Of a DNA stretch of 64,000 nucleotides, positions 1-25,861 are shown piece by piece; position 1 is the first letter of the stretch; every line of letters begins with the position of its first letter. Made by a program: the position numbers and the translations under genes. The notes beneath the pieces were generated by a model. It did no database searches and was not told where the DNA came from. It saw nothing but the letters and a program-made list of their open reading frames with translations. Where the stretch lies: the IMG/VR virus record IMGVR_UViG_3300036766_000194, positions 62,001 through 126,000 of that record. One strand, written 5' to 3'.

Positions 1-912
1 CGTAAGGAGGTAGGTGTAAATCCTCAAAACTGGTATAATTTTAAGAAAGAAAGGAAATTTGGACCAAGAATACCGCTTAGATATTTTCTAACCCATCGTC
101 GTAAATTACCAGCACCGCAAGGTTTATATTTTAGCCAAACTAGAGGCAAGGCTAGAGTGATTGGGAATCTGACTTTGCGGCTTAGTAATTGGGCCTATGT
201 TTTGGGATTCTTTTTAGGGGCTGGTTGGCTTAATAGGGATAGCCGAGGTGTTATTACGAGTGTCAGCTTTTCTGTGGATGCACCTCATTACAAAAAATTG
301 TGCACTGCCTTGGGAGCCATTAAAGAAACACCCCTGCGTATCCGAGAACGCTTCAGCACAGTTGCAATGGTTGAGATTGAGTGCGATAACAAATTCTTCG
401 CAGAAATTTTGGCTTACGTTTTCAAGGGGGCAAAGAAATGTTGGGAAAAAGAACTTCCTACAGAATGGACAACTACTTGGTCCAGGAAAGCTCGTGAACA
501 GCTATTGGAAGGACTTAGAGATTCAGACGGCGTAGCAGCTGGTTCTAATCCAACTACTAGTAGTGCCTATACAACCACTTCTCTGGCTTTAGCAAAATCA
601 ATTCTTCTCTTGCTGAGGAGTCTAGGTATATCGGGGAGTTACAGTGAACACTCTCCGAGTCTTGGGGGGTGGGTTAAGGAAAAGGACGGTTCATTACGTC
701 AGATACAAGGTAAAAGAATTTCCTACATAATTGGGTGGAGTGTTGGAACGGGTCATTGGGGTTCGGCTTTGCCCTATAAATCCCCCGAATTGTGGAATCA
801 AGCCCCAATACATAGGATTAAGGATGTCGTTCCGCCATCACATGTATACGATTTAGAAATGGAAGGTCATCCTTCTTTTTGCCTTGAAGGAATTGGTATG
901 CTAGGAAAAAAT
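1..912 (+). mobile_element. Intein with LAGLIDADG endonuclease (C-terminal part)
   Basis: LLEGLRDSDG LAGLIDADG-type motif; block F VYDLEM; ends GKN followed by +1 Ser of SATP. Confidence 0.8.
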
Positions 913-1917
913 TCCGCGACTCCAATTTACAACTATGGAGGAGAGATGTTTAACGTTCTAGATGTTCTCTATCCAGGTTGCCTAGGAACTTGGGATGAAT
1001 TTAGCCGCGAGTGGGTTGCTTATGCTTTTGGGGATAAACCCAAGATAAAGGATCCTAAAGCGTTTGGTGTTTATACTCGTGAAGCTGGACTCATGCTACG
1101 TCGGACCCGTATAGAGGTACGCCGCGAATTGCCTGAGGTTACGGTCGTCCCACACAGCATTGATTGTGACACGGCCATCCTTGACAAGATGAAGGGCAAG
1201 GCTATTGAGCTTGCCAAACTGATCCTTGCGCAGAAGCAAGATTTTCGTGGGCAAAAGATGCAAGCTGCTGGAGAATTTGATTTGCGTATGCGTCAAGCTA
1301 CAGGTATTGCCAAGGCTCCCTATGTTTGCGAATTTGTAAAATTCTTGATACAAGAGAGTAACGAACCTATTGTATTGTTCGGATGGCACAGGGAAGTTTA
1401 CGAGATCTATCTAGAAAAATTGAAAGAGTTTAATCCTGTGATGTATACAGGGAGTGAGACAGCTGTACAAAAGGAAGAGTCTAAGCAGAAATTTATCAAA
1501 GGTCAGAGTAAGGTTATGATAATCAGCCTCCGCTCTGGGGCGGGGCTGGATGGTTTACAGGATATTTGTCACATCGCGGTATTCGGAGAGTTAGACTGGT
1601 CAAATTCTGTTCATACTCAGTGTGTGGGTCGTATTCATAGAGATGGTCAGGATGAACCTGTCATCGCCTATTATTTGCTGAGTACTGATGGCTGTGATCC
1701 TATTATGTGCGATGTCTTAGGGATCAAACGGCAGCAATCTGAAGGCATATTAAATCCGTTAGGTGAGTTCGTAGGAGAAAACATAATACGGGAGCAGTAT
1801 ATAAGGGACCTAGCCGCCGATTTTTTGACGAAACAGGGAGTTGACGTTGAGAAGATTGAAAAACCCAAAGAAATCTCTGAAACACAAGTTTCCTCAGATA
1901 GCCCAGGAATGGCATGA
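1..1917 (+). CDS. SNF2-family helicase, 5'-truncated by the window edge, with an intein
   Basis: Frame open from nt 1. After the intein come SATP (motif III), IVLFGWH, SLRSGAGLDGLQ and QCVGRIHRDGQ (helicase C-terminal motifs). Confidence 0.9.
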   Translation, partial: RKEVGVNPQNWYNFKKERKFGPRIPLRYFLTHRRKLPAPQGLYFSQTRGKARVIGNLTLRLSNWAYVLGFFLGAGWLNRDSRGVITSVSFSVDAPHYKKLCTALGAIKETPLRIRERFSTVAMVEIECDNKFFAEILAYVFKGAKKCWEKELPTEWTTTWSRKAREQLLEGLRDSDGVAAGSNPTTSSAYTTTSLALAKSILLLLRSLGISGSYSEHSPSLGGWVKEKDGSLRQIQGKRISYIIGWSVGTGHWGSALPYKSPELWNQAPIHRIKDVVPPSHVYDLEMEGHPSFCLEGIGMLGKNSATPIYNYGGEMFNVLDVLYPGCLGTWDEFSREWVAYAFGDKPKIKDPKAFGVYTREAGLMLRRTRIEVRRELPEVTVVPHSIDCDTAILDKMKGKAIELAKLILAQKQDFRGQKMQAAGEFDLRMRQATGIAKAPYVCEFVKFLIQESNEPIVLFGWHREVYEIYLEKLKEFNPVMYTGSETAVQKEESKQKFIKGQSKVMIISLRSGAGLDGLQDICHIAVFGELDWSNSVHTQCVGRIHRDGQDEPVIAYYLLSTDGCDPIMCDVLGIKRQQSEGILNPLGEFVGENIIREQYIRDLAADFLTKQGVDVEKIEKPKEISETQVSSDSPGMA

Positions 1918-3148
1918 TGAGAAGAACACTCCAATTACGCCCGAAACTATTTTTGCAAGTTCTAATTTTCGAGCTTGGTGGATCTGCGGGCGCGGTCACG
2001 AGTGGCATGTTTCTGTAAACAATAGAACTTCTTTGAATACAGGGTGCCCTCTGTGCTGTAATAGAAAGGCCGATAACACTAATAGTTTGGCAACGTTGGC
2101 TTCGCATCTTTTGAAAGAGTGGGATTATGAGAAAAACGGCAATTCGATACGACCAGAGGCAATAAACGCTAGAAGCAGTAAGAATGTTTGGTGGATTTGT
2201 CCTCGAGGTCATTCTTGGCAAACCTCTCCTAGGGAACGTTACGTCAGAGGTTCCAACTGCGGACGATGTTCTTATCAGACTTCTTTGCCGGAAATACGCC
2301 TGTTTTCTGAAATCCATCATCACTTTCCCGAGGCTTTGTGGAGAACTAAGGTGTCGGGAGAGGAGTGCGATATTTTTATTCCTTCAAAATCATTGGCGAT
2401 AGAGTATGATGGAAGATTTTGGCATAAAAATTCACTGCTCAGAGACCTAGAAAAGCAGCGCGTTTTGAAAATGGCGGGGGTTGACTTATTACGTGTGAGG
2501 GAAAAACCTCTACCACTCCTCGCCGCTCGTGATATTTCGGTAGGAAAAGACGAAAGTCCAGAGATATTATGCGGAATTGTCCTGAGGGTACTAGGTAAGA
2601 TCAGTGATAACTACCAGTTAGTCAACAATCAAGAGTTTTTGACTTTGCGTTCTGGGTTACGGTTTCGGAGCAGGACGCACCCCTCTCTTTCAGAATACCC
2701 GGAATTATCAGCAGAGTGGTCCAAGCGGAATGAACCTTTGGATCCCAATAGCTTTTCAACAGGGTGCAGCCAGCAAGTTTGGTGGCACTGCAAAAAGTGT
2801 GGGTTTGAATGGCAGGCCCGTATTTGTAATAGGGTGGAGGGTTCTAACTGCCCGAAATGCCGAATTGGAAGTAATGCCTTAATGGTTAAATTCCCAAAAT
2901 TGGCCGTTTTGTGGGACCATGAAAATAACGTTGCGCTAACACTTGAAATGATGACTGCTTTTAGCAATAAAAAGGTTTGGTGGGTGTGTTCTAAGGGGCA
3001 CCGCTGGTTGTCTCAGGTGGGTAATATGGCACGTTATGGGTCCGATCCTCGTTGCAGATTTTGTGACCCGTTTCGGAGCAGAATAGACTCACCATTAAGC
3101 CGGAAAGCAAAAACCGCAGTATTGAATGATGGAGGAGTAACAACATGA
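1841..3148 (+). CDS. Zinc-ribbon repeat (DUF4379-like) protein with central PD-(D/E)XK/Vsr-like nuclease; probable free-standing homing endonuclease
   Basis: Four SL..xP....EW...WWxC..GHxW...CxxC units flanking ECDIFIP..LAIEYDGRFWH; TTG start overlaps the helicase 3' end. Confidence 0.8.
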   Translation: MTLRRLKNPKKSLKHKFPQIAQEWHDEKNTPITPETIFASSNFRAWWICGRGHEWHVSVNNRTSLNTGCPLCCNRKADNTNSLATLASHLLKEWDYEKNGNSIRPEAINARSSKNVWWICPRGHSWQTSPRERYVRGSNCGRCSYQTSLPEIRLFSEIHHHFPEALWRTKVSGEECDIFIPSKSLAIEYDGRFWHKNSLLRDLEKQRVLKMAGVDLLRVREKPLPLLAARDISVGKDESPEILCGIVLRVLGKISDNYQLVNNQEFLTLRSGLRFRSRTHPSLSEYPELSAEWSKRNEPLDPNSFSTGCSQQVWWHCKKCGFEWQARICNRVEGSNCPKCRIGSNALMVKFPKLAVLWDHENNVALTLEMMTAFSNKKVWWVCSKGHRWLSQVGNMARYGSDPRCRFCDPFRSRIDSPLSRKAKTAVLNDGGVTT

Positions 3149-6234: not shown

Positions 6235-7872
6235 TCAGGCCCGCCATTTTCCTGCGTAAACAGTAACAATAGTTCTTTTCCCATTAGGATATGAGATTAT
6301 GTGAGAATGAGTCCAACTACTCGGACCATGATTGTAACCCATACGGAGATTGGTAGAAGTACCTGCTACATATAACCCCCCGGTTATTGTAGCACTATGG
6401 GTGTGAGCGGTGTTGGCTTTGCATCCCATCTTAGAAAGATTACTAGGTGTTCCTCTTGCTCCATCGGGACCCAAGTGTCCGTGCATACCGCATTCTACTT
6501 TCTTGTTACATATAGTGAAACTATCATCTCCCAACAAGAACTTTACTCCCTTAGTAGCATTGAAACGTTCCATAGCCCACCGGGTTAGATTGAAATTTTC
6601 ATTACGCCCTTCCAGTTGCTTATACACTTCGAATTGAGCCTCTAAGAATAGTAGAGCATTGCGGGGATCCGTGCGATAGTCGTGCTCACGCAACCAACGC
6701 ATAAACCAGTTATCGTGGTTTGAATCCACCACGACCGTTTCAACACCTGTACGACAATATTCTTTTAAACATTCTGCGGTATCTTTAAGCTCCTGGGTGA
6801 CTGCATCATACCCACGTAAGTAGGCTTTAAATTTCTCGTGAGGATTTTTTGCGTTGTGATGATTTACCGAAACTCCTTCAAGGAGGTCATGAATAAACTG
6901 ATAGCTAGGACGGAGACTATCCAGCATCCCTCCTTCACCAATAGACAGATTCTTTACAGTTGGATCTACAATGGTGGCGTGGATATCTCCCCAGGTGATC
7001 GCTTCAACACGGTTACCTGTGGTTACTTGTTCGTTTTCTACTACAACATCTAGATCTTGAATACGTCCGGTATTTTCGTCTGCTTCTAATTGACGTACCC
7101 ACCAATGACCGTTACTATCTACTTCTACTAGGACTCCTCCATAAGAATGACGATGCTCAGCTTTTAATCCTGCCTTCTTTTGTATGTAGTTACGCTTGGT
7201 GACGGTGCCTGTCGTGTACATTAGCTTTGTACCCCGACCTTGCATAGTAGCAACAGAGTCCATTTCCATCTTAGCATGGGGGAAGATACAAGACTTAGCT
7301 CCCGAATAAGTCGCCATACCCGAAAGAGGATTATTCTCCGTAGGGATAATGTTCATTTCTCCACACCAAACAAGTCCTTCTCCTAATTCTTTCCTACCAT
7401 CGTAAATGTATTTTTCAATAGCATCGTCATACCAGGCTTCTTTTTGTTTAACTTCTTCCGTTCCACGCTTCACAGCTAGAGGACCGTAAGCATTTTTATT
7501 ATAAGAGTAGGTTCCCACCAAAATTTCTGCTTCATAGTATCCAGCAAGAGCTAGAAGATTGTTTAAAACAGCATCGTGAACGAATGTGTTGTTTTGAGCG
7601 GAGGTAAGAATGTATCTTTTAACCGTGCCTAGAGCAGGTAACTTTAATGATTTGTGTACGATACCCCGGATAGTTCCGCCAGCAACTTTACGTGTGATCT
7701 TTCCTACGTGCTTTTTGATATTCCGATATACCGTGGAACGAGACATTCCTAGTTTACGGGCAACTTCGGCAGCGTTCCCGCCCAGTTTGTTATACAATTC
7801 TACTATTTGTTCTCTTTTGGCAAGGACTTCAGGTGGGACGGTAGGTTTCTGGTGCTTTTTGGCTTTACTCAA
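6235..7872 (-). CDS. HTH-fused calcineurin-like metallophosphoesterase
   Basis: N-terminal NAAEVARKLGMSRSTVYR HTH; WGDIH, HD, SNHD, MHGH and AHTH metal-binding motifs. Confidence 0.7.
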   Translation of the reverse strand: MSKAKKHQKPTVPPEVLAKREQIVELYNKLGGNAAEVARKLGMSRSTVYRNIKKHVGKITRKVAGGTIRGIVHKSLKLPALGTVKRYILTSAQNNTFVHDAVLNNLLALAGYYEAEILVGTYSYNKNAYGPLAVKRGTEEVKQKEAWYDDAIEKYIYDGRKELGEGLVWCGEMNIIPTENNPLSGMATYSGAKSCIFPHAKMEMDSVATMQGRGTKLMYTTGTVTKRNYIQKKAGLKAEHRHSYGGVLVEVDSNGHWWVRQLEADENTGRIQDLDVVVENEQVTTGNRVEAITWGDIHATIVDPTVKNLSIGEGGMLDSLRPSYQFIHDLLEGVSVNHHNAKNPHEKFKAYLRGYDAVTQELKDTAECLKEYCRTGVETVVVDSNHDNWFMRWLREHDYRTDPRNALLFLEAQFEVYKQLEGRNENFNLTRWAMERFNATKGVKFLLGDDSFTICNKKVECGMHGHLGPDGARGTPSNLSKMGCKANTAHTHSATITGGLYVAGTSTNLRMGYNHGPSSWTHSHIISYPNGKRTIVTVYAGKWRA

Positions 7873-7975: not shown

Positions 7976-9100
7976 ATGCCAGAAGAGAACAAGACTCGTA
8001 AGCGCATAAACTTTCAAGGAATTCCTATTGCCATAGAGTGGGAAAAGGGTTCCGAACGCAAGGGGGTAAACCCTGATGGTTCTGAATGGTCTAATCCTAT
8101 GTATGCGGATTACGGGTATATTATACCTTCTAAGAACTCTGTTCCTGTCATAGAAGAATTCTTCAAACACTATGAACGTGAAGTGGACTACTACAAAGAA
8201 GCTGCCGACATTGCTAGAGAAAAATTAGAAAATGCTTTACAGGCCGAAGGCATCCGAGCACAAGTAACCTGCCGGGCTAAGTCTCCTAAGCGTTTGCGTA
8301 AAAAATTATATCGTCGCTATCCAGAGAAACACTATAAGACGTTTCGTGACATATATAAGGACATAGTGGACTTAGCGGGAGTTCGCGTCGCTCTATATCT
8401 TCCCGCTGACCGTGATGTTGTAGGACATATTATAGGAACACTATTTGAAGAAACTCGCCCCGTTAAGCATTTCCCTACAGATAAAGGAACAGAAGATAGT
8501 GTGGGGTATATTGCTAATCATTATCTGGTGAGATTATCACCCGATACACTAAAGGGATCTGATCGTCGTTATGCCGAGACTAAAATAGAGATACAAGTGG
8601 CTTCTGTCCTCATGCACGCTTATGCTGAAATCTCACACGACCTCGTTTATAAGCCCGAAAAAGGAGAATTGTCTACTGAAGAAAAACTACTTCTTGAACA
8701 ATTGAATCAAATTGTTTTGGCTGGAGAAGTAGCTCTTACACGATTACAGAGTAAGATTGAAGGTAGGACCGATAAGGATCTCCGTTTTGAACTAGTTGGA
8801 AGTTGTATAAAGAAAGCATCTGGGGTTTTAGCGGCTAACGGTTGGTCCAAAGACGGAGAGAACATGGATGTTTACGTGGGAGATAATTATGAATCTCCTT
8901 ATGTCTATGCCATTGAACAGTTGAGAGATGGGCAATTTGATGAATACAAGTTTCTTTTGGGATTTGATTCTCTGGAGCAAGCTCGTGAAATCTACTTGAA
9001 ACACTTTCCGACTCAACCTAATTGGTGGGAAGAAAATGTAGAGGGGATTTATGAAGTTCCCCTGGAAGAGTTCCGTACTGCCGTGGATAATCATGCCTAA
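7976..9100 (+). CDS. Polyvalent-protein-type inorganic pyrophosphatase (InPase) domain split by an inserted RelA/SpoT synthetase domain
   Basis: InPase N-half IAIEWEKGSERKG..DG.EW...M.ADYGYI; synthetase motifs RAKS..RL.KKL, DLAGVR, GY.A.HY, EIQV, HAYAEISHDLVYK; InPase C-half KDGENMDVYVG...EQ...FDEYKFLLGF.S...A...YL.HF. Confidence 0.85.
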   Translation: MPEENKTRKRINFQGIPIAIEWEKGSERKGVNPDGSEWSNPMYADYGYIIPSKNSVPVIEEFFKHYEREVDYYKEAADIAREKLENALQAEGIRAQVTCRAKSPKRLRKKLYRRYPEKHYKTFRDIYKDIVDLAGVRVALYLPADRDVVGHIIGTLFEETRPVKHFPTDKGTEDSVGYIANHYLVRLSPDTLKGSDRRYAETKIEIQVASVLMHAYAEISHDLVYKPEKGELSTEEKLLLEQLNQIVLAGEVALTRLQSKIEGRTDKDLRFELVGSCIKKASGVLAANGWSKDGENMDVYVGDNYESPYVYAIEQLRDGQFDEYKFLLGFDSLEQAREIYLKHFPTQPNWWEENVEGIYEVPLEEFRTAVDNHA

Positions 9101-12100
9101 TAAATGGAATCATGCTTCTACTCAGATTAACTTACCTCCTGATGTAGCTGAACAGGTACTTACTGCTGGGAAAAATGTTCCTGAAGAAATACTATCTCTC
9201 AATGGACGGGATGATAATCCTCATATAAGTTTAAAATACGGGGTGGAGGAGAATGAAGAACTTCTTCGTGAAGCTGTTAAGGGTATTTTTCCTTTCACAG
9301 TTACACTGGGAAAGACTAAGACTTTCTTAGCTCGTGATCCTTACGCTGGAACTCCCCTAGTTGTAGAAGCAGCTGCTCCTGAACTTGCTAAACTTAACAA
9401 GTTGATTGATAAAGCAATAGGGAATAAGCCTGAAGATTTTTCCTTTGAACCTCATGTCACTCTTGCCTATATAGAAGAGAAACATTCTGCGGAATATGTA
9501 GGAAAAGATTGGCTAGCCGGGGTTACGTTTACGGTAGATTCTATTGTTCTTTCTAAGATGAACGGAGAACAAGTTAGCATTCCTTTAGAGACAAAACCGG
9601 AAGAAGAATTCCGTCGCCACGTACCTACTCACTTCAGTTCTCGTTTACTTACAGCTAAACTGCCTGATGTGGATATGAAGCGTTTCAAACGGATTATTGA
9701 ACCTCTCAGACCGCGTTTAATAGGAAAAGATGATGATGAAATTGCCGAAATCCTTAATGAAACACATGAAGATACCGGAGTGTCATACCATCTAAGTACC
9801 CAAGAATCTGGTCACAGCGAATGGGCGCAGAATTATCTTAGCGGCGCGTTTTACGTTGTGGGTCAAGGTGATATTGTTGTCATGTTAGAATATGGTATAG
9901 GAAATTTATTCGAGAATATCACTGAAGAAAAGTGGGGTTATTTTGTAAGTGTGTTGTCTTCTTTAGTTGTGCACGAAGTCACTCATGACTCTCAATTCGC
10001 AGCTATTTTTCACAAATACAAGGGACAGTCCGAACCTATGGAACGCGCTCTTAAAACTATGGAAAGCGGACCCGAACAAGGTAGGGCTGTTTACTTTTCT
10101 AATCTTCATGAGCTAGCTGCCTTTGCCCGCCAAGCAGTAGAAGAATTACGCGAGACACACTACACGGATGAGGATATTTCCAACTTATTGAGGGACTCTA
10201 AGGTCCAGAAAGACGCTATAGGTGATTCTCATGTATTCTACCTTTATTGGGATTTTTTTGGACCAGGAGATCCCATCTATAAGAAGTTCCTTTATCAGAT
10301 GGCAAAGGTCATAGGAACCACCCATGTAGCTTCGGATGAAAGCGCATATCAAGCTGCTGCGGATAAGTTCCATATTGATTATAAAGGAGTTGCCAAAGAT
10401 TATACGACTCCTAGCAATGCTCTAATTATGTACAACGATCCGGTGAGCGGGACTTCCATTGGGGTGTTCGTAGCAGAATTCAGTGAAGATAAAGTTAAAG
10501 AGCATTTGAACGCTGCTCGTCAACGATTTAATTTACCCAAAGTTTCTGGTGATACTATCTCCACTTCACAATTGGAATGTGGTTGGTGTAAAAAGGTTAT
10601 CCGCGAAGGTACCCAACCAGCCAGTCATACTATTTGTCCCGAGTGTCATAAGAAATATTTCCCAGAGACTCTAAAGAAGACTTCCACAAAAATGTATAGT
10701 GGAGGTCGCCCTGGTAGCGGACCGGGTAAAATTGTGACATATTTTACACCAAATAAACAGATGGCTGAGAGCTATGTTTCTCTGTATAATGATCGTTTTG
10801 GTGGAGGTGGAGAATTGAGGGAGGCGGATGTCAATCTTATTAAACCTGCCCCCTATGAAGTTATTGAAGCTGAAGCTAAGAAATTGGGAATTGATAACAC
10901 CCATTACACACCCGCTAGCATTTTTGATAGGAATCTCCACGGCGAGAAAATGGTAGGTACATTAGTAAAGAATCTAAAGGATCAGGGATATGATGGTACT
11001 ATTCTTGATGACATTGGTTATGGCGTAGAGATTCAGGATAAAGCCTTCATTAAGTTTTCCTATAACAAACTCTCTCCTAACCAACCGGGGAAGAAATACG
11101 TTGAAGAAACAAACGGATGGGCGGATCAGAATGAACAGTCTCGTGAAGGCGATGAGGCTTACCCAGAACTTGAAACCTTAGCTCCAGAATTATTTAAGGA
11201 ATCTGCCGTTACATCTCCTCTCAACGCTGTTCAGAATTCTGTAAATAAATTTATGACAGAATTCTGGCCTGATCTTCCTAAGCCTAAAATCAAGATTATA
11301 AATCACACGGTCCCTGTAAGTTTAGGAAATTGTCTTTGGACTTCTAAAGATCCTGATACTTCGATTATAGAGATAGAAAAAGCTGTATGTGGTCACCAAG
11401 AAACACTGGATCGTATTGTAGCTCATGAACTTTGTCATCACGCAGAATACATAAATGAAATCCGTAAGATTCCTACTGACCAAATCAAGATTATGAATCG
11501 GTTACACGGCGATCATGGAAAATGGTGGAAAGCGGAAGCCGACAAAGTAAACAACATATATGGACAGAGCTATGTTACGGTGAAGTCTGACCAAAGTATG
11601 GTTCAGGAACAAGACAAAGAATTTTATGTTCTCCTTAAATCTAGTCCTTATGGGATTATTTGGTGCTATGCCGTTCGTCCTTCTTTAAAGCAAAAATTAT
11701 ACATAAATCATCAGATTCCTCAGGGAGCTAAACTCGTTAAAACTAAAGACATAAGTCTTGCTAGAAATCCTGGTGGAACTATTGGTAGCGGGTGGAGAAG
11801 ACCGGGTACTAAGGAAATGGCAGAAAAACTTTCTACTCTTTGGAATGAAGTTCCCTCTGTAAAGGTATATTCCTTACATAATCCTCTATTTAAGAACGCC
11901 GCAACTGACGTCATTGGACAAGTTTACCTATTACACTTCAATGAACCTTTCAAGCATGCTAGACACTATCTAGGGTGGGCACTGGACGCGGATAGAAGGA
12001 TAGAGCAGCACCGTAACGGAGTCGGCTCACGACTCACCCAAGTCATAAAAGAGAATGAGATAGGCTTCGAGGTTGCTAGAATCTGGGATAATGCTACCCG

Positions 12101-15100
12101 AGGATTTGAGCGTAATCTGAAGAATCAGGGTGGACTTAATCGTCAATGTCCAGTTTGTAGGGCGTTAGGAATGGACTCCCGTAAAAAATGGAAGGAACGT
12201 CAAGAAGAGATTCAAGTTGCTCCTCCGTCAGGTACCTATGGTCCCGACTATGTTCAAACTAGTAAGACTGCTTGTCTTGCTATGACTAAGAGTGCAGGGG
12301 TTGAACCAAGAATTACAACGCAAAAGAGTAGTGTGGATAATGAAGGACATGTACACTACGAAATTAGCATGGTTGACGAGAACGGGGATGATCTTGGATT
12401 CTTAAAGGTCATCGCCAAACCCAAGGGATCTCCAGGAGGAGATTACGAAGAACCGCATTTGAAGATTCACGAGATTTTTGTAGAAGAACATTCTCGCCGT
12501 AGAGGATATGGCACATTGTTATATCAAGCAGCACGGAATCTGGCACGACAGCTTGGCCTGCCAAATGTTTATTCAGACACTACTATCTCAGATGAAGCTC
12601 GTTTGGTTTGGGAAAATAAACTACCCGCAAAACGTTTTAAAGATAATAGAGGAACACCTATTCGTTACCGTATGAAGGCTTCCTCAAATGAATTCTACCA
12701 CGTCACTCGATATGAAAATGCGGCTAATATCTTGGAGCATAATTATTTCCGAACAACAACGGGACAAAATGTAAGAGGATTGTCTACGACAAAAGATCCT
12801 AACTACTGGTGGGGTAGTAAAGAAGTTCGTTTTGTTTTAGACAAACAAAAGCTGTCTGAAAAATACGAATTAAAAAGTGAAAACGAGACCATCTATACCG
12901 AAGGATCTCTTCTTAATGAAAACGAAGTTGTGGTGTTATTTGATTCTGCTATCTTGAATGCTAGAGATTACATCCTTAGAGTGGACTACTTTGAAGCTCC
13001 AGGGGAGCCAGAGTATGAAGACTTTATTTCACAATTGAAAGATGTAAAGTCTAGAAAAATTGGAAATGCTAAATTTGCTGCTTTGTCTACAGCCGAAAAG
13101 AAAATGGTTGATGATCAGAAACTATCTCAGGAATTCACCAAAAAGATTATTGAAATATTAGAAAACCTTCTTAAGAATTACAAATACACCTATCCTGAGG
13201 ATTGGGATAGACTAATTGTCAAAGAACTCAGGAAGAAATTGAATATTTCGGAACAAATTGCTTGGGATTTGGATGATATATTGACTGTTGCTTCATATCT
13301 GGATATATATTCTTACTTTACTGATAAGGGATTACAACTGGCTGGAATTGATCCCAAACTCGTAAAGAAACCAAAACGAGAAATTGAAGAAAGCAGCATG
13401 GGTGATCTTGAAGAGGAAGATAAGAAACTTTTAAAGATGACTTTTCATTCAGAACTTCTTCCCGTGAAGTATTTGTTGCACGGAACGTCTGACAAATTCA
13501 TAGCTGACATTAGAAAAAACGGATTACATGGTAAGAAAATTTATCTCACCACGACGTCAGAAATTGCTACCTCCGAAGCTGAGTATACTGTTGAGGGAGA
13601 TCCTTTTTCAGAAGGAAAGAATTGGGGTCAAATTTCTGGAGGAAAACCCATAGTAATTGTGATTGACCCTAAGAAGATTAAGTTGTCTCTTCGTCCTGAT
13701 CCTGAATATCTTGCTTCCATGAAGGAAGAGGGAGAGATTCCTTATGCTTTCTATACTCGACAGACTGTTCCTCCTTCTGCCATAATTAAGATTGTTTCTC
13801 TTGAGAATGCTGAAAAATATGGAGTGGACAAGAAACCTCCCACCTTAGAGATGATGAAGACCGCCGCTATAGGCTTAGAACAACTCAAACACGATTTTGA
13901 TAAGCGTCCTGCTCAGTTAGTGACAAAACAGGAAGTTTTAGATACGACATTTATCTTACCCGATGGAACTTCCCTAGGATTCTACGATCATCCAGAACGT
14001 GACCAAATCGTAGACGAGAAGAATATACAATTTAAAGATTTTTGTATCCGCACAGGGACTATCTGGTCTAAACGCAGGGAAGACATCTTTCATATATATA
14101 AGCGTCCTAATGATGCTCAGATGGATAGATTACATAAGATGTTTCAACTCAATGGAAGTCAACTGGGTTGGATTATTAACCGGGGTCCTGCTGCTCAAGA
14201 GATAAAGAAAGTTAAAAAGGGAGTTTGGAATAAATTTCTCCGTGAATTGGATATAGTGTATCAGACTGAGGACCGTAAGAAGAAATCATCTAGTAGTAAT
14301 GATTTTAGTGATTTAGTTGATCTTCATACTCAAATTCATAAACACCCGGCTAGAAGTGAGGACCATACTCCTAGTCATGCCCAATGGAGTAATTATGTTA
14401 AACAGTTAGAAAATTTCTATACTAGATTGAAATTGACAGGGGATGAATACTGTGACTGTAAAGAATTTCCTACAATGGGAATGTTTCGAAAAACTCATCC
14501 TCTGGTTACGGTTAAAAGTAATTTAGATAGATTAACCGATGAAGTAGACCACACCTATTCTGAAACAGCCCTTATGGGAATGCATTCATTTCTAACTCAT
14601 TTACAAGATAAACATAAAGACCGTGAGAAGACCAGCGCGTCCTCTTCATTTGATTCTTGGTTCATAGGTTCCAAAGTTGTAGACGCTCAAGGCAAACCCA
14701 TCATTTGTTATCACGGAACAAGCCAACCCTTTTCTCGAATAAACATGGGCAAAGGTTCGCAAGGAGTTTTCTGGGTCACATCAGATCGTTCCAAGATTGA
14801 GCGCGGCGGGGCTGGAGCCAGTTCCAACAAGCACATTCTAGGAATGTATGTCAACATCAAGAAGCCCGCTGGGTGGGATGAATACGAACGTCTTTCTTTA
14901 GGAGAACTGAAGCGTGACTATGATGGGGTTATTCTCCCCGAGGGAGATCATTTTGATGCCATTGTTTTTAAGCCTAACCAAGTCCGGATGGTAAAATCCG
15001 CTGCTACAGATCCTGATGCTTGGAATGAGGAACCTGAGTCTCTTCCTAAGGGAAAAGTAACAGGAGACATGATTAGAAAAGGTGCTTGGTTTCTACTGCC

Positions 15101-15773
15101 TGACGGTACCTGGTTTGGTGTCAGGGCAAGTGAGGCAGAGCACTCCTGGATAGAACACTTAGTCCCGGAAGGTTCCATACGTGTACCAAATGAAATGGTT
15201 TATGATATTTCTAGAAAACCCACAGAAGACCAGAAGCAGGAGATAGCAAGATTAGTGAATCAATCCTCTAGTTTAGTTATGTATTGGGACATTTATAAAG
15301 ATGGAGGGGAATATTCTGGTCAGGGTTCCTTAGGAGATTTTCTACGTTTCTTGAGTAAGATTTATGGTAAAACAGCCTCCTCATCCGAATTAAAACAGAA
15401 TCTTATGCGGTGGCGGGGTAATATCGCGGCCCGTGCTCAAAAAGTCTATGATGAATGGACCCAAAATGAAGAAGGAATAGATACCGAATATGGTGGTGGC
15501 GGACCCTGTGATGCTATAGCAGAACAGATACAAGATTTACTAGAAAGTCTAGGGGTCAACACGATGAGCGGGGGGCAAGAAGGTGACGATCATGCCTGGA
15601 TTATCGCCTATAATTACAAAACTGGTGAAGCCTGTGGAGTGGACATTCCTCATAGTGTATACGAAACTGGAGGGGGCTACTCCTGGAAGAAGATTCCTAA
15701 CGTAGTTTTCACCCCGAATGATGTAGAGATATGGCCCGTAGACATTAAGGACATAGAATATGAAGATCAGTAA
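9093..15773 (+). CDS. Giant polyvalent protein (~2226 aa): 2H phosphoesterase, zincin peptidases, GIY-YIG, GNAT and several ADP-ribosyltransferase-like domains
   Basis: HISL/HVTL (2H); HEVTH and HELCH (zincin/SprT); VYLLHF..PFKHARHYLG (GIY-YIG); RRRGYGTLLY (GNAT); FYHVT..STT, LLHGT..IYLT and CYHGT..FWVT (ART-like). ATG at 9093 overlaps the upstream stop. Confidence 0.85.
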   Translation: MPNKWNHASTQINLPPDVAEQVLTAGKNVPEEILSLNGRDDNPHISLKYGVEENEELLREAVKGIFPFTVTLGKTKTFLARDPYAGTPLVVEAAAPELAKLNKLIDKAIGNKPEDFSFEPHVTLAYIEEKHSAEYVGKDWLAGVTFTVDSIVLSKMNGEQVSIPLETKPEEEFRRHVPTHFSSRLLTAKLPDVDMKRFKRIIEPLRPRLIGKDDDEIAEILNETHEDTGVSYHLSTQESGHSEWAQNYLSGAFYVVGQGDIVVMLEYGIGNLFENITEEKWGYFVSVLSSLVVHEVTHDSQFAAIFHKYKGQSEPMERALKTMESGPEQGRAVYFSNLHELAAFARQAVEELRETHYTDEDISNLLRDSKVQKDAIGDSHVFYLYWDFFGPGDPIYKKFLYQMAKVIGTTHVASDESAYQAAADKFHIDYKGVAKDYTTPSNALIMYNDPVSGTSIGVFVAEFSEDKVKEHLNAARQRFNLPKVSGDTISTSQLECGWCKKVIREGTQPASHTICPECHKKYFPETLKKTSTKMYSGGRPGSGPGKIVTYFTPNKQMAESYVSLYNDRFGGGGELREADVNLIKPAPYEVIEAEAKKLGIDNTHYTPASIFDRNLHGEKMVGTLVKNLKDQGYDGTILDDIGYGVEIQDKAFIKFSYNKLSPNQPGKKYVEETNGWADQNEQSREGDEAYPELETLAPELFKESAVTSPLNAVQNSVNKFMTEFWPDLPKPKIKIINHTVPVSLGNCLWTSKDPDTSIIEIEKAVCGHQETLDRIVAHELCHHAEYINEIRKIPTDQIKIMNRLHGDHGKWWKAEADKVNNIYGQSYVTVKSDQSMVQEQDKEFYVLLKSSPYGIIWCYAVRPSLKQKLYINHQIPQGAKLVKTKDISLARNPGGTIGSGWRRPGTKEMAEKLSTLWNEVPSVKVYSLHNPLFKNAATDVIGQVYLLHFNEPFKHARHYLGWALDADRRIEQHRNGVGSRLTQVIKENEIGFEVARIWDNATRGFERNLKNQGGLNRQCPVCRALGMDSRKKWKERQEEIQVAPPSGTYGPDYVQTSKTACLAMTKSAGVEPRITTQKSSVDNEGHVHYEISMVDENGDDLGFLKVIAKPKGSPGGDYEEPHLKIHEIFVEEHSRRRGYGTLLYQAARNLARQLGLPNVYSDTTISDEARLVWENKLPAKRFKDNRGTPIRYRMKASSNEFYHVTRYENAANILEHNYFRTTTGQNVRGLSTTKDPNYWWGSKEVRFVLDKQKLSEKYELKSENETIYTEGSLLNENEVVVLFDSAILNARDYILRVDYFEAPGEPEYEDFISQLKDVKSRKIGNAKFAALSTAEKKMVDDQKLSQEFTKKIIEILENLLKNYKYTYPEDWDRLIVKELRKKLNISEQIAWDLDDILTVASYLDIYSYFTDKGLQLAGIDPKLVKKPKREIEESSMGDLEEEDKKLLKMTFHSELLPVKYLLHGTSDKFIADIRKNGLHGKKIYLTTTSEIATSEAEYTVEGDPFSEGKNWGQISGGKPIVIVIDPKKIKLSLRPDPEYLASMKEEGEIPYAFYTRQTVPPSAIIKIVSLENAEKYGVDKKPPTLEMMKTAAIGLEQLKHDFDKRPAQLVTKQEVLDTTFILPDGTSLGFYDHPERDQIVDEKNIQFKDFCIRTGTIWSKRREDIFHIYKRPNDAQMDRLHKMFQLNGSQLGWIINRGPAAQEIKKVKKGVWNKFLRELDIVYQTEDRKKKSSSSNDFSDLVDLHTQIHKHPARSEDHTPSHAQWSNYVKQLENFYTRLKLTGDEYCDCKEFPTMGMFRKTHPLVTVKSNLDRLTDEVDHTYSETALMGMHSFLTHLQDKHKDREKTSASSSFDSWFIGSKVVDAQGKPIICYHGTSQPFSRINMGKGSQGVFWVTSDRSKIERGGAGASSNKHILGMYVNIKKPAGWDEYERLSLGELKRDYDGVILPEGDHFDAIVFKPNQVRMVKSAATDPDAWNEEPESLPKGKVTGDMIRKGAWFLLPDGTWFGVRASEAEHSWIEHLVPEGSIRVPNEMVYDISRKPTEDQKQEIARLVNQSSSLVMYWDIYKDGGEYSGQGSLGDFLRFLSKIYGKTASSSELKQNLMRWRGNIAARAQKVYDEWTQNEEGIDTEYGGGGPCDAIAEQIQDLLESLGVNTMSGGQEGDDHAWIIAYNYKTGEACGVDIPHSVYETGGGYSWKKIPNVVFTPNDVEIWPVDIKDIEYEDQ

Positions 15774-19854: not shown

Positions 19855-20133
19855 TTATTCTGTCTCTCGGTGATTAGGATAATTGGGATAGCGATTCTTC
19901 AGGGCCCAAACGTACATCCAGCCAGCAACACATCCAATAGACAGATGAGCTAGACCCATTTTCAAATAGTGTTGGAGTTCTTCTGTCTCCATAGGACCTT
20001 CATTAGTCATGATGAAGAGTAAATTTAAGAATCCAGACAGCAGGCAGAATACAGACAAACTTAGAGTAATAAATCGTTGGATTTGAAAATTGAGAACGTC
20101 AACAACGGATTTGAACCTCTTCCATCTACTCAT
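19855..20133 (-). CDS. Small membrane protein
   Basis: Two hydrophobic segments; overlaps the upstream stop. Confidence 0.55.
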   Translation of the reverse strand: MSRWKRFKSVVDVLNFQIQRFITLSLSVFCLLSGFLNLLFIMTNEGPMETEELQHYLKMGLAHLSIGCVAGWMYVWALKNRYPNYPNHRETE

Positions 20134-21151
20134 CCCAATGATTCCATTCTATGCGACTACGCATCCAATGTCCGTGCGTTTGTACGTGATCTTTTCGAAC
20201 ATACTTGCCCACTCGGGTAGAAAATTCTTTTAAGTGAAATGACCCCGCAGGCCGCACAACGTAACCTTCCCACTTGTCAGAATTGAGGGAATATTGTTCT
20301 AGTATTTCGGGTGAAAAGTCTTCCCATTTCTTTCCATACCATCTTACCGGAACGGTTTGTAGACCGAGGAGTCCCGCATAATCTACTGTATCTTTCCAAG
20401 GGAGACAAGTCAAACCGTCCCAAATACTGAATACAAGAAAGAACGAAGGCAAATTCGAATAATATATGCTATGTTTGGCGGTAAGATTTTCACCACAAAT
20501 ACGCCAATTATTAGGAATGTCATGAGCAATACTAGCATGTAATGCTTTGACACGATCTCTTGATGAGTGCGCTTCATAATCCAGAGACCGAGCATGCATA
20601 TAGTCCCTGTACATGGTGGTATTTTCACCGTCCATTTTTTCGGTGACAACTACTTCGGTACCATTCCAGGTGTCTAAGATTTCTTCAGACAATTCTCGGT
20701 CGTCTTCCTTCATTCCGGGGGACCAAGGAAAATGCCAAGTACGAGGATATTTTACACGATTAAGAAACAAATGTCGTACAGGTTCAAGAACTTTCTGCAC
20801 AGATTCATCGTCATAAAGTTCTCCCTTCAAGCGTAAGCCATTTGTTAAGACAGGGTTGCCCCACTTGTCATAGGGCTGGTCCGGATAAAGATGTGGGGGT
20901 AGAATGGTGTTTTTAATTCCAGCTACGGCGCGAATTTCATCGGTTGCTAAGTCTGTTGCTTCAGCTGCTAGATGACATTTGCCACAGAGAGTTGCTCCGT
21001 TTTCAGAGTAATATCCCCCATCAGGGAATAGTCTACGTTCCATAATATGATGAGCATCTTGCCCCGGCTGGCCGCAAACCACACATTTGTGATTATCCCT
21101 CGCGAAGACTCCTTCGCGGAACTGATCACGTGTTAGGAGGCCTAATCCCAT
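20126..21151 (-). CDS. HNH nuclease-RNA ligase fusion
   Basis: RD.HKCVVC...AHHI....NGATLC..CH (HNH); KYPRT.H.PWSPG, TEKMDGEN (motif I), GEN and EGYVVR (ligase). Confidence 0.85.
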   Translation of the reverse strand: MGLGLLTRDQFREGVFARDNHKCVVCGQPGQDAHHIMERRLFPDGGYYSENGATLCGKCHLAAEATDLATDEIRAVAGIKNTILPPHLYPDQPYDKWGNPVLTNGLRLKGELYDDESVQKVLEPVRHLFLNRVKYPRTWHFPWSPGMKEDDRELSEEILDTWNGTEVVVTEKMDGENTTMYRDYMHARSLDYEAHSSRDRVKALHASIAHDIPNNWRICGENLTAKHSIYYSNLPSFFLVFSIWDGLTCLPWKDTVDYAGLLGLQTVPVRWYGKKWEDFSPEILEQYSLNSDKWEGYVVRPAGSFHLKEFSTRVGKYVRKDHVQTHGHWMRSRIEWNHWDE

Positions 21152-21378
21152 ACCTTTACATACTCTGCTATCTTGTCGTCTTTGTGCGGGTCGTCCTGGT
21201 CAATAAACATCTGGCAACTACACAAGTTAAAATCAAATTCGCACTCTTGAAAAACTGTAGAACTTTCTAGGTATTTTCTTGTTTCTTCGGGCCAAACCAG
21301 ACTGGCATGATGATTCCAATTTGTGTGACCACAAACACAAACCTTACTGTACACCTGCTTCGTTTCCAAAGTTTTCAT
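21142..21378 (-). CDS. Cys/His-rich hypothetical protein
   Basis: CVCGH..WNH..C..C.C pattern. Confidence 0.6.
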   Translation of the reverse strand: MKTLETKQVYSKVCVCGHTNWNHHASLVWPEETRKYLESSTVFQECEFDFNLCSCQMFIDQDDPHKDDKIAEYVKVWD

Positions 21379-21495
21379 GAGTTATATACCCGTCAGGCCA
21401 CACAATAGAAAGAGGAATTTTCATCTTCCGTGTGTAGCGAATTGTCGTCCATGTACCGCTGCGTAACTCTTCACTAATACCTGCCGGGGCAGAGA

Positions 21496-21861
21496 TCATA
21501 CGTGTTGCTGAATTGACAATATCTTTATCTCTTTTGTGGTAGAGAGAATGGTAAATTTTTGGGGAACGAGTTTGTTAATAAAGTCAACATATTCTAAGGG
21601 AGCCTCAGCATTCAGATAAGGACGAGGCTTACAGAAGAAACGATTACGAGTATTTGTAGGCGGGTGTACCACTGTGTTAAAACCCAACATCCACGCGGTC
21701 TCATTTATTTGAGCAGCACCTACACAATCTCCATGATGGAATTCTCCTCTATCAAAAGCGTTAAAAGAAGACTCCAATATGTCTTGTAATAGTCTACGCA
21801 CGGAGATTTTTGTTCTGGGGTCATTCCTATCAACTCTTAATTTTAAGGAATAATTTCTCAT
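21496..21861 (-). pseudogene. Decayed DprA/Smf-like Rossmann-fold phage gene (EFHHGDCVGA family)
   Basis: Recognisable HHGDCVGA..HPP..PYL, but the expected GMTPEQ lies in another frame (5-T run at 21807-21811) and expected downstream segments are missing. Confidence 0.5.
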
Positions 21862-22661
21862 TTCATATCTCTGTTAATAACGAGTTGGTCCGCTGTGCAC
21901 GAAGTAGCCTTTTTATCGTCACGTTTTCGCAACATAACAGGTTGGACAATGTGAAGATTTTTAGTTGAATAAAGGTATTGTACTTCCACAACATCACCCG
22001 GACGCACTCTTGTTCTTCCAATAAGACTTACACCACTCACCCGGTGTAACCTATCCCTATTGAATACTCCAATTTCAACACTGTTTTTCCCTTCCGCAGA
22101 AGGTCCAATAACTACAAAGTCGGCAGACTTCCAAAATTTCCACTTATAGTGCTGTCCCGCCCGTCCTTCCTTGTATACAGCATACTTATTCTTGAAGACG
22201 ACTCCCTCGGCATTTTCCGCATGTAGCTTTTTAATGAGGGCAAGTTTTTCCTTATAGGTCCATGCAGTCTTGAGAACATTGACCATAGGATGAAAATTAC
22301 CGAATTCCTCATGAAGACGTTCTTCGCGGTAGCGGTATTCTTCCGGTGCCAGAGCTTCATTGTTAAGGATAAGGGCGTCAAACCCGCTGTAAAAGGGGGA
22401 AAGTACGGTTCCTTCCAATTCACCATCAATGACAAAACGAGGGAGAGGATGATTCAAAAGAACAGAGACTAATTTACGAGGAAGATCTCTTTTTTCGCCT
22501 TCACGGTTGAAACAGAATACAGAACTTTTTTCGCGAACGATTACACGCCGCTTTCCATTACGTTTTTCCTGCGCTCCAAAACTACCATTACCCAACAATT
22601 TAGTGGCGACTTCATTCAGAGTCACCGCCGTTAAAAGTTCCGCTTTGAATTGAAAGTCCAT
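21858..22661 (-). CDS. Compact ATP-dependent DNA ligase
   Basis: QEKRNGKR (motif I), IDGEL, FDAL, EGVVFK and KWKF, followed by an OB-fold. Start placed at MDFQ; an in-frame GTG at 22751 is also possible. Confidence 0.8.
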   Translation of the reverse strand: MDFQFKAELLTAVTLNEVATKLLGNGSFGAQEKRNGKRRVIVREKSSVFCFNREGEKRDLPRKLVSVLLNHPLPRFVIDGELEGTVLSPFYSGFDALILNNEALAPEEYRYREERLHEEFGNFHPMVNVLKTAWTYKEKLALIKKLHAENAEGVVFKNKYAVYKEGRAGQHYKWKFWKSADFVVIGPSAEGKNSVEIGVFNRDRLHRVSGVSLIGRTRVRPGDVVEVQYLYSTKNLHIVQPVMLRKRDDKKATSCTADQLVINRDMK

Positions 22662-22832
22662 AAAAAGTGTTAGAGATTCGGGCCACAACGGGGCAGCTTC
22701 AATCTCTATGAATATTCTACTTGATAGGACCAGAAAAAGGTTAGCGATCACGTTTGACGATAAAGCCTAATAGGAATGCCCAGATTACGACGATGCCAGT
22801 TCCTATTTTCGCCACATGTTACATGGCGGGAA

Positions 22833-23099
22833 TTAAATTCTTGATAAGATTATATCTAGTAATTTTTCTTCATTCCATCGGATAAGAACAGCCGTGTCAC
22901 TGAAGTCGGGAATGAAGTCCTGTTGAACAACTCCGTCACCCAAGGAAGTGAATTTGTCATAGAGAGTGAGATGACGTTTGACCATGATGCGTCTGATAAG
23001 TTCCCTACGACGCTCCAGATTGCTAGGAGACAGAAGAAACTTGTATTCTCGTACCTTGTCACCGTCAACAAGTCGGCGGTAGTAAACAGGAACTTTCAT
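22833..23099 (-). CDS. Hypothetical protein
   Basis: GGAGGAGG RBS before ATG at 23099. Confidence 0.65.
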   Translation of the reverse strand: MKVPVYYRRLVDGDKVREYKFLLSPSNLERRRELIRRIMVKRHLTLYDKFTSLGDGVVQQDFIPDFSDTAVLIRWNEEKLLDIILSRI

Positions 23100-23125
23100 T
23101 GTGCTTCCTCCTCCACAAGTAGTGA

Positions 23126-24007
23126 TTATAGAAAGATTAAATTGCCTTCCCGATGAGTAACAATACCGTCGGACAGCATACTCTTCCATCCTTCAGCACT
23201 GGCTGTTGCGTTGCCAAAAGTGGTAGCATTGGTTGCCGCCCATTCGCATAGGGCATCCAAAGTACGAAATACCGGGCTAATAGGAGATCCTTTAGTGGTT
23301 TGCCAAAGTTGGAACCCCCTCCCCCGAGGAGGTTCCGTTGGCTGCCAGGAATTCGCCTTACGTTTGTAATAGGTAGACTTCCAAATTTGTCCGCTTCCCT
23401 TACAGCTGGGACAACTTAGATTCTTTACGCCTTCCCTTTTGGCTCGTGCTTTTACACAAGTCCATTGATTGACACTGTCATGCCCGAAACCTGTTAGGCT
23501 CCAGTCATTTACTTCTTGAGGAGTAGGAATATAACCGTTGTCAAAGGGCAACCAAGAATTTCCTCCTTCGGCTCTCTTCTTACGGATGATCTCTTTGTGT
23601 TCTTCGGTAAGGGGAATACGAGTGAATTCCCAAAGACGATCTGCTTTAAGCAAAGCATCCACGTCTTCCTTGCTTAGATGATGACACCAACTAGAATTAA
23701 ATAGAGTAGCAAGACGCTGAGATTCTTCGTCAATCGTAATCCAAGTTGATTCAAGCCAATTGTTAGTTGCCAGATTACGAATAATCTTGTGATTACTAGA
23801 AAAAGGGCTACTCCCTGTGGAAGAAAGATCAAAAGGAGCACTTCCGTACCATTGATCATTGAGAACTTTGATTTCAGGATTACATCCCAATCCATCACAA
23901 GCATCACACTGCTTCATATAGGTGAGATAAGGGTTTACATACCCTTTCCAGGTTTCCTTTAGAGGAGTATTGAATTTCAACGGCACTCGTTTCAATTCGC
24001 GTCCCAT
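23126..24007 (-). CDS. Phage hypothetical protein with CxxC motifs
   Basis: MGRELKRVP...CDACDG...CPSCKGSG...FQLWQTT..GSPISPVF. Confidence 0.75.
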   Translation of the reverse strand: MGRELKRVPLKFNTPLKETWKGYVNPYLTYMKQCDACDGLGCNPEIKVLNDQWYGSAPFDLSSTGSSPFSSNHKIIRNLATNNWLESTWITIDEESQRLATLFNSSWCHHLSKEDVDALLKADRLWEFTRIPLTEEHKEIIRKKRAEGGNSWLPFDNGYIPTPQEVNDWSLTGFGHDSVNQWTCVKARAKREGVKNLSCPSCKGSGQIWKSTYYKRKANSWQPTEPPRGRGFQLWQTTKGSPISPVFRTLDALCEWAATNATTFGNATASAEGWKSMLSDGIVTHREGNLIFL

Positions 24008-24010
24008 AAC

Positions 24011-24761: not shown

Positions 24762-24870
24762 ACTACTCCTGGTCCGAGTTTCAAATTCCAAAAGTTTAAT
24801 CGTCGCTCCAGCTTCGTAACGAGAAACGATTCATGATTTGATACTTCATTTTTCCTCCCTACATCTGCCT

Positions 24871-24910
24871 ATAAAAGAGGGAGGGGTCAAGGACTGAGCC
24901 TTGACCCCCT
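24871..24910 (-). terminator. Rho-independent terminator downstream of ku
   Basis: Stem GGGGTCAAGG-loop-CCTTGACCCC followed by CTTTTAT on the minus strand. Confidence 0.7.
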
Positions 24911-24959
24911 GGTGGCGCTGGTAGGGGTCTTGGAGGAACGCTACGCGCCACCAAACTTG

Positions 24960-25844: not shown

Positions 25845-25861
25845 GCTGTTTTTCAAAAAAG

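Follow-up and report, generated by a model that had tools for sequence, protein, structure and literature searches.

How does a single phage polypeptide act in which about 15 modules, nine of them assigned to enzyme folds, follow one another within 2226 amino acids (aa)? The question is raised by a gene at 9093..15773 (+) of a 64,000-nucleotide stretch of DNA, the window of this study, which is bases 62001-126000 of IMG/VR virus record IMGVR_UViG_3300036766_000194, a complete 299,875-bp genome, with direct terminal repeats, of an uncultured sediment jumbo phage. The answer that we prefer, and to which we give a probability of about 0.72, is that the gene encodes a polyvalent multi-enzyme protein that would act early in infection, would most likely be packaged and injected, and would be cut at short motifs lying at the junctions between its modules. 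The modules assigned to enzyme folds cover about 60% of the chain, or 72% when the probable peptidase module U1 is counted; catalysis, packaging, timing and cleavage of the protein are what we infer from the features described below.

Membership in the class of phage polyvalent proteins, as defined by Iyer et al. 2017 (PMC5512222), is supported. The assignment follows from the presence of the hallmark domain PF18760 together with 2H and GNAT domains, from a translationally coupled gene that encodes RelA_SpoT and InPase domains, and from the shuffling of modules among relatives, and it upholds the identification made in the initial annotation of this locus. According to PMC5512222, the class comprises proteins in which 2-15 unrelated catalytic domains are united in one polypeptide of a phage or conjugative element, and RelA_SpoT and InPase are restricted to the phage-type among them. 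Examples given there are a protein of Roseovarius Plymouth podovirus 1, with an ADP-ribosyltransferase (ART) domain and an N4-type RNA polymerase (RNAP), and a Pseudomonas prophage protein with 12 ART copies. Our protein resembles the class in having up to about 15 unrelated modules, ART-PolyVal domains (H-Y-D clade), a GNAT domain adjoining an ART, zincin-like peptidase modules, one of them only probable, and a shuffled module order. It departs from the class in that two of its four ARTs are not ART-PolyVal and in that its locus lies beside a T5 A1-like gene rather than beside MuF or portal genes.

The open reading frame (ORF) is uninterrupted over 9051..15773 (+), as seen in the ORF listing and its translation. 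Its start codon is ambiguous by 14 residues. With the ATG at 9093, the overlap with the upstream gene is 8 nt and the product has the 2226 aa that had been called in the initial annotation, the same as in the database gene call P0002. The ATG at 9051 is preceded by the better Shine-Dalgarno sequence (GAGG, with a 6-nt spacer); it would extend the product to 2240 aa (P0001) and the overlap to 50 nt. Residue numbers used here are those of P0001, that is, the numbering from 9093 plus 14. The protein was scanned against Pfam twice, whole and as segments, and was also searched with NCBIfam and PDB profiles. The whole-protein Pfam scan placed ART-PolyVal PF18760, 2_5_RNA_ligase2 and GNAT above threshold and SprT-like just below it, and the segment scan had no match in residues 190-440, 1205-1345, 1335-1600, 1590-1870 and 1980-2240. 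The NCBIfam scan gave nothing decisive, single-sequence searches of both protein halves against PDB sequences gave nothing below E 0.29, and PDB profile searches for the U1, ART 1/4 family, U6 and SprT modules gave nothing significant.

Could so long an array be an assembly chimera, a set of falsely fused genes, or a structural protein built of repeats, for instance a tail fibre or a protein of the head interior? We consider this very improbable. The sequence is present in sediment metagenomes, and a 26.8-kb contig of run X1, which is possibly the source sample, covers 9774-15773 with 0 differences. Runs X2 and X3 cover the ORF in part, and the X3 fragments match at >=99%. The X2 contig (depth about 11) would speak for an artefact, since it carries an 11-nt deletion at 15276 that would break the frame between the last two modules, U5 and U6; this deletion, whether genuine variation or a fault of the assembly, would separate or truncate the Cys-His-Asp module U6. 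So would the splitting of the array, in one related phage, into three genes: on a 65-kb contig the third locus that we compared holds genes of 834, 552 and 1164 aa, with ART 2 in the 552-aa gene. Relatives of 1.4 to 3.7 thousand aa, however, carry the same kinds of fused modules, and the chain has no tandem repeats, matches no structural-protein families and is assigned to enzyme folds over about 60% of its length. Neither of the two outcomes that would have spoken against the initial annotation was seen: its ART-like segments do have the ART fold, and none of the modules resembles a structural tail repeat. A megablast of the region against GenBank phages gave no match, none of the RNA runs searched contains the sequence, and scans for promoters and terminators stayed at or below chance level.

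The most conspicuous feature of the chain is that it contains four ART folds belonging to three families. The initial annotation had marked four ART-like segments by their YSG..YFTP, YHVT..STT, LHGT..IYLT and YHGT..FWVT motifs, and each of them holds. ART 4, at 14628..14993 (+), is a canonical ART-PolyVal domain that scores 56.9 bits with PF18760 against a cutoff of 31.2 and 34.1 bits in a six-frame search of the genome, which found PF18760 nowhere else. The family, of the Tox-ART-HYD2 clade, is characterised by a His in strand 1, a Tyr in strand 2 and an Asp in strand 5; ART 4 retains the histidine, in CYHGT, and has tryptophan at the aromatic position (FWVT), as do several relatives. ART 1, at 10677..11150 (+), is a homologue of the same family with an insertion. 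Its PF18760 score is 21.5 bits (E 4e-4), below the cutoff, while hhalign of ART 1 against the ART 4 family gives a probability of 96.2% and E 2.2e-9, and an alignment with its closest homologues shows that it shares the ART 4-family blocks TYFTP, KPA and GYDG.IL.D. The tyrosine of TYFTP is retained; the catalytic strand-1 histidine is replaced by serine (YSGG). At this position P0004 and P0011 have His and P0005 has Asn. Because the homology is clear but the histidine has become serine and the Pfam score lies below the cutoff, ART 1 is, as judged from its sequence, a degenerate ART-PolyVal member, and it is probably inactive or altered.

The other two ARTs belong to two further families. ART 3, at 13449..13856 (+), belongs to the Tpt1/PARP-like ARTs of H-Y type (LLHGT, IYLTT) and has about 15-18 homologues, solo and embedded. 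Its profile matches the NAD+ lobe of eight Tpt1/KptA structures, the best with E 3.5e-7, followed by DarT and PARP10/12/14, and weak matches to PTS_2-RNA and PARP are found in 10/19 and 8/19 members of its family, respectively; against the ART 4 family, hhalign gives 59% and E 9e-5. These profile comparisons confirm its assignment as an ART domain. ART 2, at 12675..13070 (+), represents an unannotated ART family with conserved YH.T, YFR, GLSTT and E-x-E. About 25 relatives were found, mostly solo proteins of 140-170 aa, and none of the family members reaches a Pfam threshold; a solo homologue lies on a T4-like contig. Both homologue counts come from an exhaustive search of residues 1224-1862, which found relatives for ART 2 and ART 3 only. 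The identification of ART 2 as an ART is confirmed by its predicted fold, not by a sequence profile. A sequence-level link to ART 3 or ART 4 was tried and rejected (hhalign 15% and 0.5%, respectively), hence the link is structural only.

How do these domains compare with known ARTs? T4 Alt, which is packaged in the head and injected, and ModA and ModB have host proteins as their targets when infection begins, and they offer a functional model for polyvalent ARTs. They differ in being single-domain proteins of the R-S-E clade, whereas the ARTs here are of the His type, with ART 2 combining the His with an STT and an E-x-E pattern reminiscent of the R-S-E enzymes. Relative to Tpt1/KptA and DarT, the similarity extends to the NAD+ lobe only, at 8-20% identity, and no DarG-type partner is present here. 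On the window's own segments the Pfam PTS_2-RNA and DarT models stay below threshold, with no Pfam match to PTS_2-RNA and an NCBIfam match of only E 0.016.

The proximity of two ARTs to Tpt1 raises the matter of RNA repair, for which the first module of the chain has also to be considered. This is a 2H phosphoesterase module at 9093..9605 (+) (residues 15-185), already named as such in the initial annotation, with the catalytic motifs HISL and HVTL. It scores 42 bits with PF13563 against a cutoff of 27 and 27.8 bits with PF02834, has kept both HxS/HxT motifs, gives a weak match to Acb1 (E 0.029), and has homologous modules in more than 12 relatives. It can be imagined that the protein is mainly a housekeeping hub of RNA repair and NAD+/ADP-ribose metabolism rather than an effector directed against the host or its defences. 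In such a hub, 2H would open 2',3'-cyclic phosphates, Tpt1-like ARTs would remove the 2'-phosphate at the expense of NAD+, and a nearby ligase would seal tRNAs cut by host anticodon nucleases. Such a logic of KptA, 2H and ligase is known for jumbo phages (PMC9503650). The intact 2H motifs agree with it, as does the standing of ART 2 and ART 3, which are closest to Tpt1/KptA by structure and profile, and an HNH-RNA ligase gene lies 4.4 kb downstream of the polyvalent gene, at a position kept in a relative.

Tpt1 itself consists of two lobes, an N-terminal RNA lobe with a catalytic Arg-His-Arg and a C-terminal NAD+ lobe. The matches of both ARTs are confined to the latter (chain residues about 90-135 with the ART 3 profile and 109-230 with the ART 2 model), and no RNA-binding N-lobe with Arg-His-Arg was detected for ART 2 or ART 3, so that the two-lobe architecture is not matched. 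Moreover, Iyer et al. (PMC5512222) describe polyvalent-type 2H domains as not linked to RNA ligases, and the GNAT, zincin, GIY-YIG, ART-PolyVal and thiol-enzyme modules have no part in RNA repair. An RNA-repair function is thus possible for part of the protein; as an account of the whole chain it is rather improbable.

Between 2H and ART 1 lies U1, at 9612..10385 (+) (residues 188-445), a probable zincin-like metallopeptidase module with HEVTH at residue 308. The initial annotation had called this motif a zincin. What stands is that the HExxH and a Glu about 45 residues downstream, within a helix-like block HE[LI].A.ARQAV, are invariant in 3 sequences, including P0004 and P0010; Pfam, NCBIfam and PDB profile searches with the module gave no match. 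A language-model search led to unnamed solo phage families with a score of 0.96. As HE.TH with a downstream Glu is the pattern described for polyvalent metallopeptidases, U1 is probably a zincin of that kind. It is followed at 10386..10676 (+) (residues 446-542) by a small stretch, U1b, for which the sole match is a weak one to P0004, and by a CxxC-x15-CxxC zinc ribbon (CGWC at 510, CPEC at 529) that has weak zinc-ribbon Pfam matches only; word-index searches with residues 186-545 and 1596-1870 returned only the protein itself and P0004.

The second zincin fares better in profile searches. The SprT-like module at 11196..11891 (+), with HELCHH at residue 792 and a conserved C-terminal extension of about 90 aa, scores 28.8 bits with PF10263 as a segment, against a cutoff of 25.6, and 24.0 bits within the whole protein. 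Its AHELCHH is invariant in 6 homologues, in agreement with the SprT-like HELCH of the initial annotation, and tblastn with the module finds a Tunturiibacter phage (E 3e-26). The next module, at 11892..12263 (+), is a probable GIY-YIG nuclease followed by an invariant CPxC. Here the conserved pattern VYLL..HYLGW..R..H...FER.LK agrees with the GIY-YIG that had been proposed, and the profile evidence is weaker: PF01541 gives E 0.07-0.09 in 3/4 homologues, and the top PDB profile match, 1zg2, is a GIY-YIG protein at only E 0.31. The assignment of the GNAT acetyltransferase at 12264..12674 (+), which had likewise been made from the letters of the sequence, is borne out by PF00583 (34.7 bits; cutoff 20.7). 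The module limits of the initial annotation lie, with few exceptions, within about 10-70 nt of those given here; its HEVTH block falls inside the longer U1, and its GIY-YIG block stops about 80 nt too early.

The last module, U6, at 15369..15770 (+), is unannotated and comprises the last 135 residues or so. It occurs, by BLAST, in ten other places among 23 large relatives, twice in P0003, and Pfam assigns no family to any of its members. Their alignment contains an invariant Gln, upstream, and an invariant Cys (GGG.C), His (DDHA) and Asp (VD.P). In a structural model, with a predicted local distance difference test (pLDDT) score mostly of 70-96 per 10-residue block, the Cys begins a helix, the His immediately precedes a strand, and the Asp closes the strand after that. 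This placement of Cys, His and Asp is like that in arylamine N-acetyltransferase (NAT), the Pasteurella toxin C3 domain, SseI, LapG and protein-glutaminase, which are the best structural neighbours. Foldseek with a model of U5 and U6 together gave no clear match; a structure search independent of Foldseek returned SseI, TglA, LapG, protein-glutaminase, factor XIII and PNGase, interleaved with nucleotidyltransferases, and a search of the ESM Atlas returned Transglut_core clusters. We are therefore fairly confident that U6, as modelled, is a Cys-His-Asp enzyme of transglutaminase/NAT/papain-like fold, leaving aside the type of reaction.

For the remaining modules, hardly any relatives were found. 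U2, at 13071..13448 (+), is helix-rich by the appearance of its sequence, and neither U2 nor U4, at 14283..14627 (+), has a homologue in 1.84 billion representatives or a match to any family. U3, at 13857..14282 (+), contains FILPDGT and has its sole homologue in P0003, at 55% identity. No homologues were found for U5, at 14994..15368 (+), which contains FLLPDGT and whose model is of low confidence (pLDDT 32-60). A comparison of U3 with U5 gives E 0.001 by BLASTP and E 8e-4 with a probability of 25% by hhalign, so that the two sequences may be paralogues of one another. None of the unassigned modules matched a Pfam LPD family. The initial annotation saw in its unassigned modules, among which U6 then was, candidates for new anti-defence domains, a role that such modules might have.

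That these modules are exchanged as units is apparent from the relatives. BLAST segments to 23 of them have common boundaries and differing module orders. The arrangement of an A1-like gene, a RelA-SpoT/InPase gene and a polyvalent gene is common to three other phages. One of these, the P0005 phage (contigs up to 325 kb), has flanking genes that are 42-65% identical to ours and an equally long polyvalent protein in which only four modules are in common, namely 2H, ART 1, GIY-YIG and U6, and these are reordered; the order of InPase and RelA_SpoT is different as well. The P0009 phage (contigs up to 332 kb) has a solo SprT-like gene of 132 aa that precedes its first polyvalent gene, and directly after the latter, at L005:15921-21122 (+), a second polyvalent gene of 1733 aa with two ART-PolyVal domains and a NUDIX domain. 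The comparison of these sequences shows that the same modules undergo fission and fusion. Lastly, in P0011, modules homologous to 2H and ART 1 are fused to a MuF head-morphogenesis domain, PF04233.

If modules are joined and exchanged in this manner, what marks their borders? The pattern K-[TSNAE]-[AS]-[ASTC] occurs at 10 sites in the protein, against a mean of 1.3 in shuffled sequences, and 0/2000 shuffles reach 10. The sites are at residues 543, 716, 948, 1072, 1209, 1603, 1745, 1860, 1982 and 2107, and each precedes a module. Segments delimited by BLAST or phmmer start <=5 residues from six of them (543, 716, 948, 1603, 1860 and 2107), and this coincidence with independently mapped boundaries is a stronger argument for the motif than the statistic. 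The closest relatives likewise have more sites than expected, with 6 observed against 0.8 expected in P0003, 7 against 1.2 in P0005 and 7 against 1.5 in P0012; the motif is also enriched in P0004 and P0007, and in relatives it is aligned at module starts. The codons differ from site to site, and therefore the motif is conserved as protein and not as a DNA or recombination sequence. It is tempting to propose, from the sequence pattern, that the junction motif is a candidate processing site. No such recurring motif was found in the available sections of PMC5512222.

Copies of the same motif occur elsewhere in the genome. An 881-aa ORF outside the window, at genome positions 208742-211387 (-), has 6 copies, or 6.8 per 1000 aa where the genome averages 0.84, and several of the neighbouring ORFs at 203-208 kb have 2 copies each. 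No PHROG annotation is available for these motif-rich ORFs.

Taken together with the modules, the motif leads to the mechanism that we prefer. The protein would be present at the very start of infection, going by Iyer et al. 2017 and 2022. Most likely it would be packaged in the head and enter the cell together with the DNA, a route that has been proposed for the class; otherwise, it would be a pre-early product. Cleavage at the junction motifs, for which the protein's own peptidase-like modules or a maturation protease of the phage would be responsible, would then free individual enzymes that act in parallel. Host proteins or nucleic acids would be the substrates of the ARTs and GNAT, which would draw on NAD+ and acetyl-CoA; 2H might degrade 2',3'-cyclic or 2'-5'-linked nucleotide signals, or trim the ends of cleaved RNA; GIY-YIG would cut nucleic acid; and the thiol and zinc peptidase-like domains would process the polyprotein or attack host proteins. 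A precedent for cleavage of a polyvalent protein is provided by DdrB/DarB of phage P1 and other head-internal proteins that undergo processing, large anti-restriction proteins with a zincin-like peptidase that are cleaved by proteolysis before packaging. Our protein differs from them in lacking the methylase-helicase dyad, and the one link in sequence is a weak PHROG match of the N-terminus of the upstream gene to a DarB-like family.

Several observations weigh against this proposal. The motif pattern was defined post hoc, which weakens the shuffle statistic; it is missing at the boundaries 2H/U1, U1/zinc ribbon, ART 2/U2 and U2/ART 3; and P0008, P0011 and P0014 have 0 sites. The neighbouring genes are of replication, repair and early type (helicase, HNH, A1-like, RNA and DNA ligases, Ku, rIIA/B), not head genes. 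Finally, searches of the genome for MuF (Pfam), for HK97 and T4 capsids and for S77/S78 proteases came back empty; these searches were weak, and two of them had no positive control.

The gene neighbourhood is better suited to another explanation, in which the protein stays out of the virion: made in the cytoplasm as a pre-early or early product, from a transcript shared with the RelA-SpoT/InPase gene, it would remain uncut and work as one multi-enzyme scaffold. The locus is surrounded by early and replication-type genes and adjoins a homologue of the T5 pre-early gene A1, neither MuF nor portal genes occur within 8 kb, and Pfam finds no MuF in the genome. Furthermore, according to PMC5512222, N4 virion RNAP and the ArdC/TraC1 polyvalent proteins act unprocessed. 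For an uncut chain, however, a motif at 10 boundaries is hard to explain. In addition, three peptidase-like modules are embedded in the protein, and homologous modules are fused to MuF in one relative. Nor does linkage seem to be needed, as the same modules are separate genes in another phage. We thus regard the unpackaged, intact scaffold as unlikely, while early expression without packaging, taken by itself, is a slightly better but still doubtful proposition. Packaging and injection is the alternative towards which we lean slightly, since it has the precedent of the class and the MuF fusion in P0011 on its side; the gene neighbourhood gives it no support. In weighing the two, the early-acting polyvalent protein that is packaged, injected and cut at its junctions thus continues to be our preferred account.

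The upstream gene, at 7976..9100 (+), encodes 374 aa with InPase (PF18823, 102.8 bits) and RelA_SpoT (PF04607, 39.2 bits). It is translationally coupled to the polyvalent ORF, in the same operon and in a conserved locus. The InPase domain is split by the inserted RelA_SpoT, with profile positions 7-56 at residues about 4-53 and positions 57-133 at residues about 291-369; in L003, a related phage, nothing separates the InPase halves, and RelA_SpoT comes after them. A frameshift fusion of this gene with the large ORF was considered and rejected, as no homologue of the upstream protein occurs inside the polyvalent proteins of relatives. The upstream gene is separate in 3/3 of the relative loci examined, and in two of them further small genes intervene. 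On the other side, at 6235-7872 (-), lies the divergent neighbour of the operon, a homologue of T5 A1 or "DNA transfer protein" with an N-terminal helix-turn-helix motif (phrog_1745, E 1e-176). Its family has 1134 phage records, and the gene is kept at this place in at least three other phages.

Farther downstream, a cluster at 20126-29674 (-) contains, from PHROG and Pfam context, the HNH-RNA ligase fusion mentioned above, a DNA ligase-like gene, a Ku-like end-binding gene and rIIB/rIIA. In a related jumbo phage, synteny is kept for the RNA and DNA ligases. Other parts of the window hold observations of a different kind. A 1369-aa ORF at 38454-42563 (+) has PHROG matches to helicase, terminase large subunit, primase and a DnaC-like loader in different parts, and it may be an intein-containing or composite replication gene. 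At 157-3148 (+), a helicase ORF is overlapped by an HNH/homing-endonuclease ORF (1841-3148), an overlap that may reflect insertion of a mobile endonuclease. Four tRNA genes (Met-CAT, Tyr-GTA, Leu-CAG and Leu-CAA) lie at 56072-56147 and 63598-63873, three of them tightly clustered.

What, then, does this protein add to the class described in 2017? What is new in detail is the union of three ART families in one chain, one of them with a His/STT/E-x-E signature. New as well are the recurrent Cys-His-Asp module, the SprT-like, GIY-YIG-like and thiol-enzyme modules, the junction motif, and the locus formed by the A1-like gene and the RelA-InPase cassette. In keeping with this, the terms GIY-YIG, SprT, transglutaminase, papain, NlpC, thiol and cysteine are absent from the text of PMC5512222. 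A more far-reaching proposal, which we put forward tentatively and think unlikely as a whole, is that the junctions are truly cleaved, so that a polyprotein of a dsDNA jumbo phage, cut by an embedded peptidase-like module or by the head protease, would yield at least 12 enzymes, including undescribed families of His/STT/ExE ART and Cys-His-Asp type and a new "LPDGT" domain, and that the locus would be a dedicated site for hypervariable effector cassettes across a lineage of phages with genomes of about 300 kb.

Polyvalent proteins are regarded as the earliest-acting molecules of a phage in a newly infected cell, and almost none has been studied biochemically. With three ART families in one chain, one of which is invisible to sequence profiles, the protein would make a compact test bed for the targets of phage ARTs. 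U6 draws attention to a Cys-His-Asp domain, hitherto without annotation, that many polyvalent proteins contain, and the junction motif provides a directly testable hypothesis for the processing of such giants. Irrespective of how the chain is processed, the conserved locus in related jumbo phages is a place where new effector modules may be mined by comparison.

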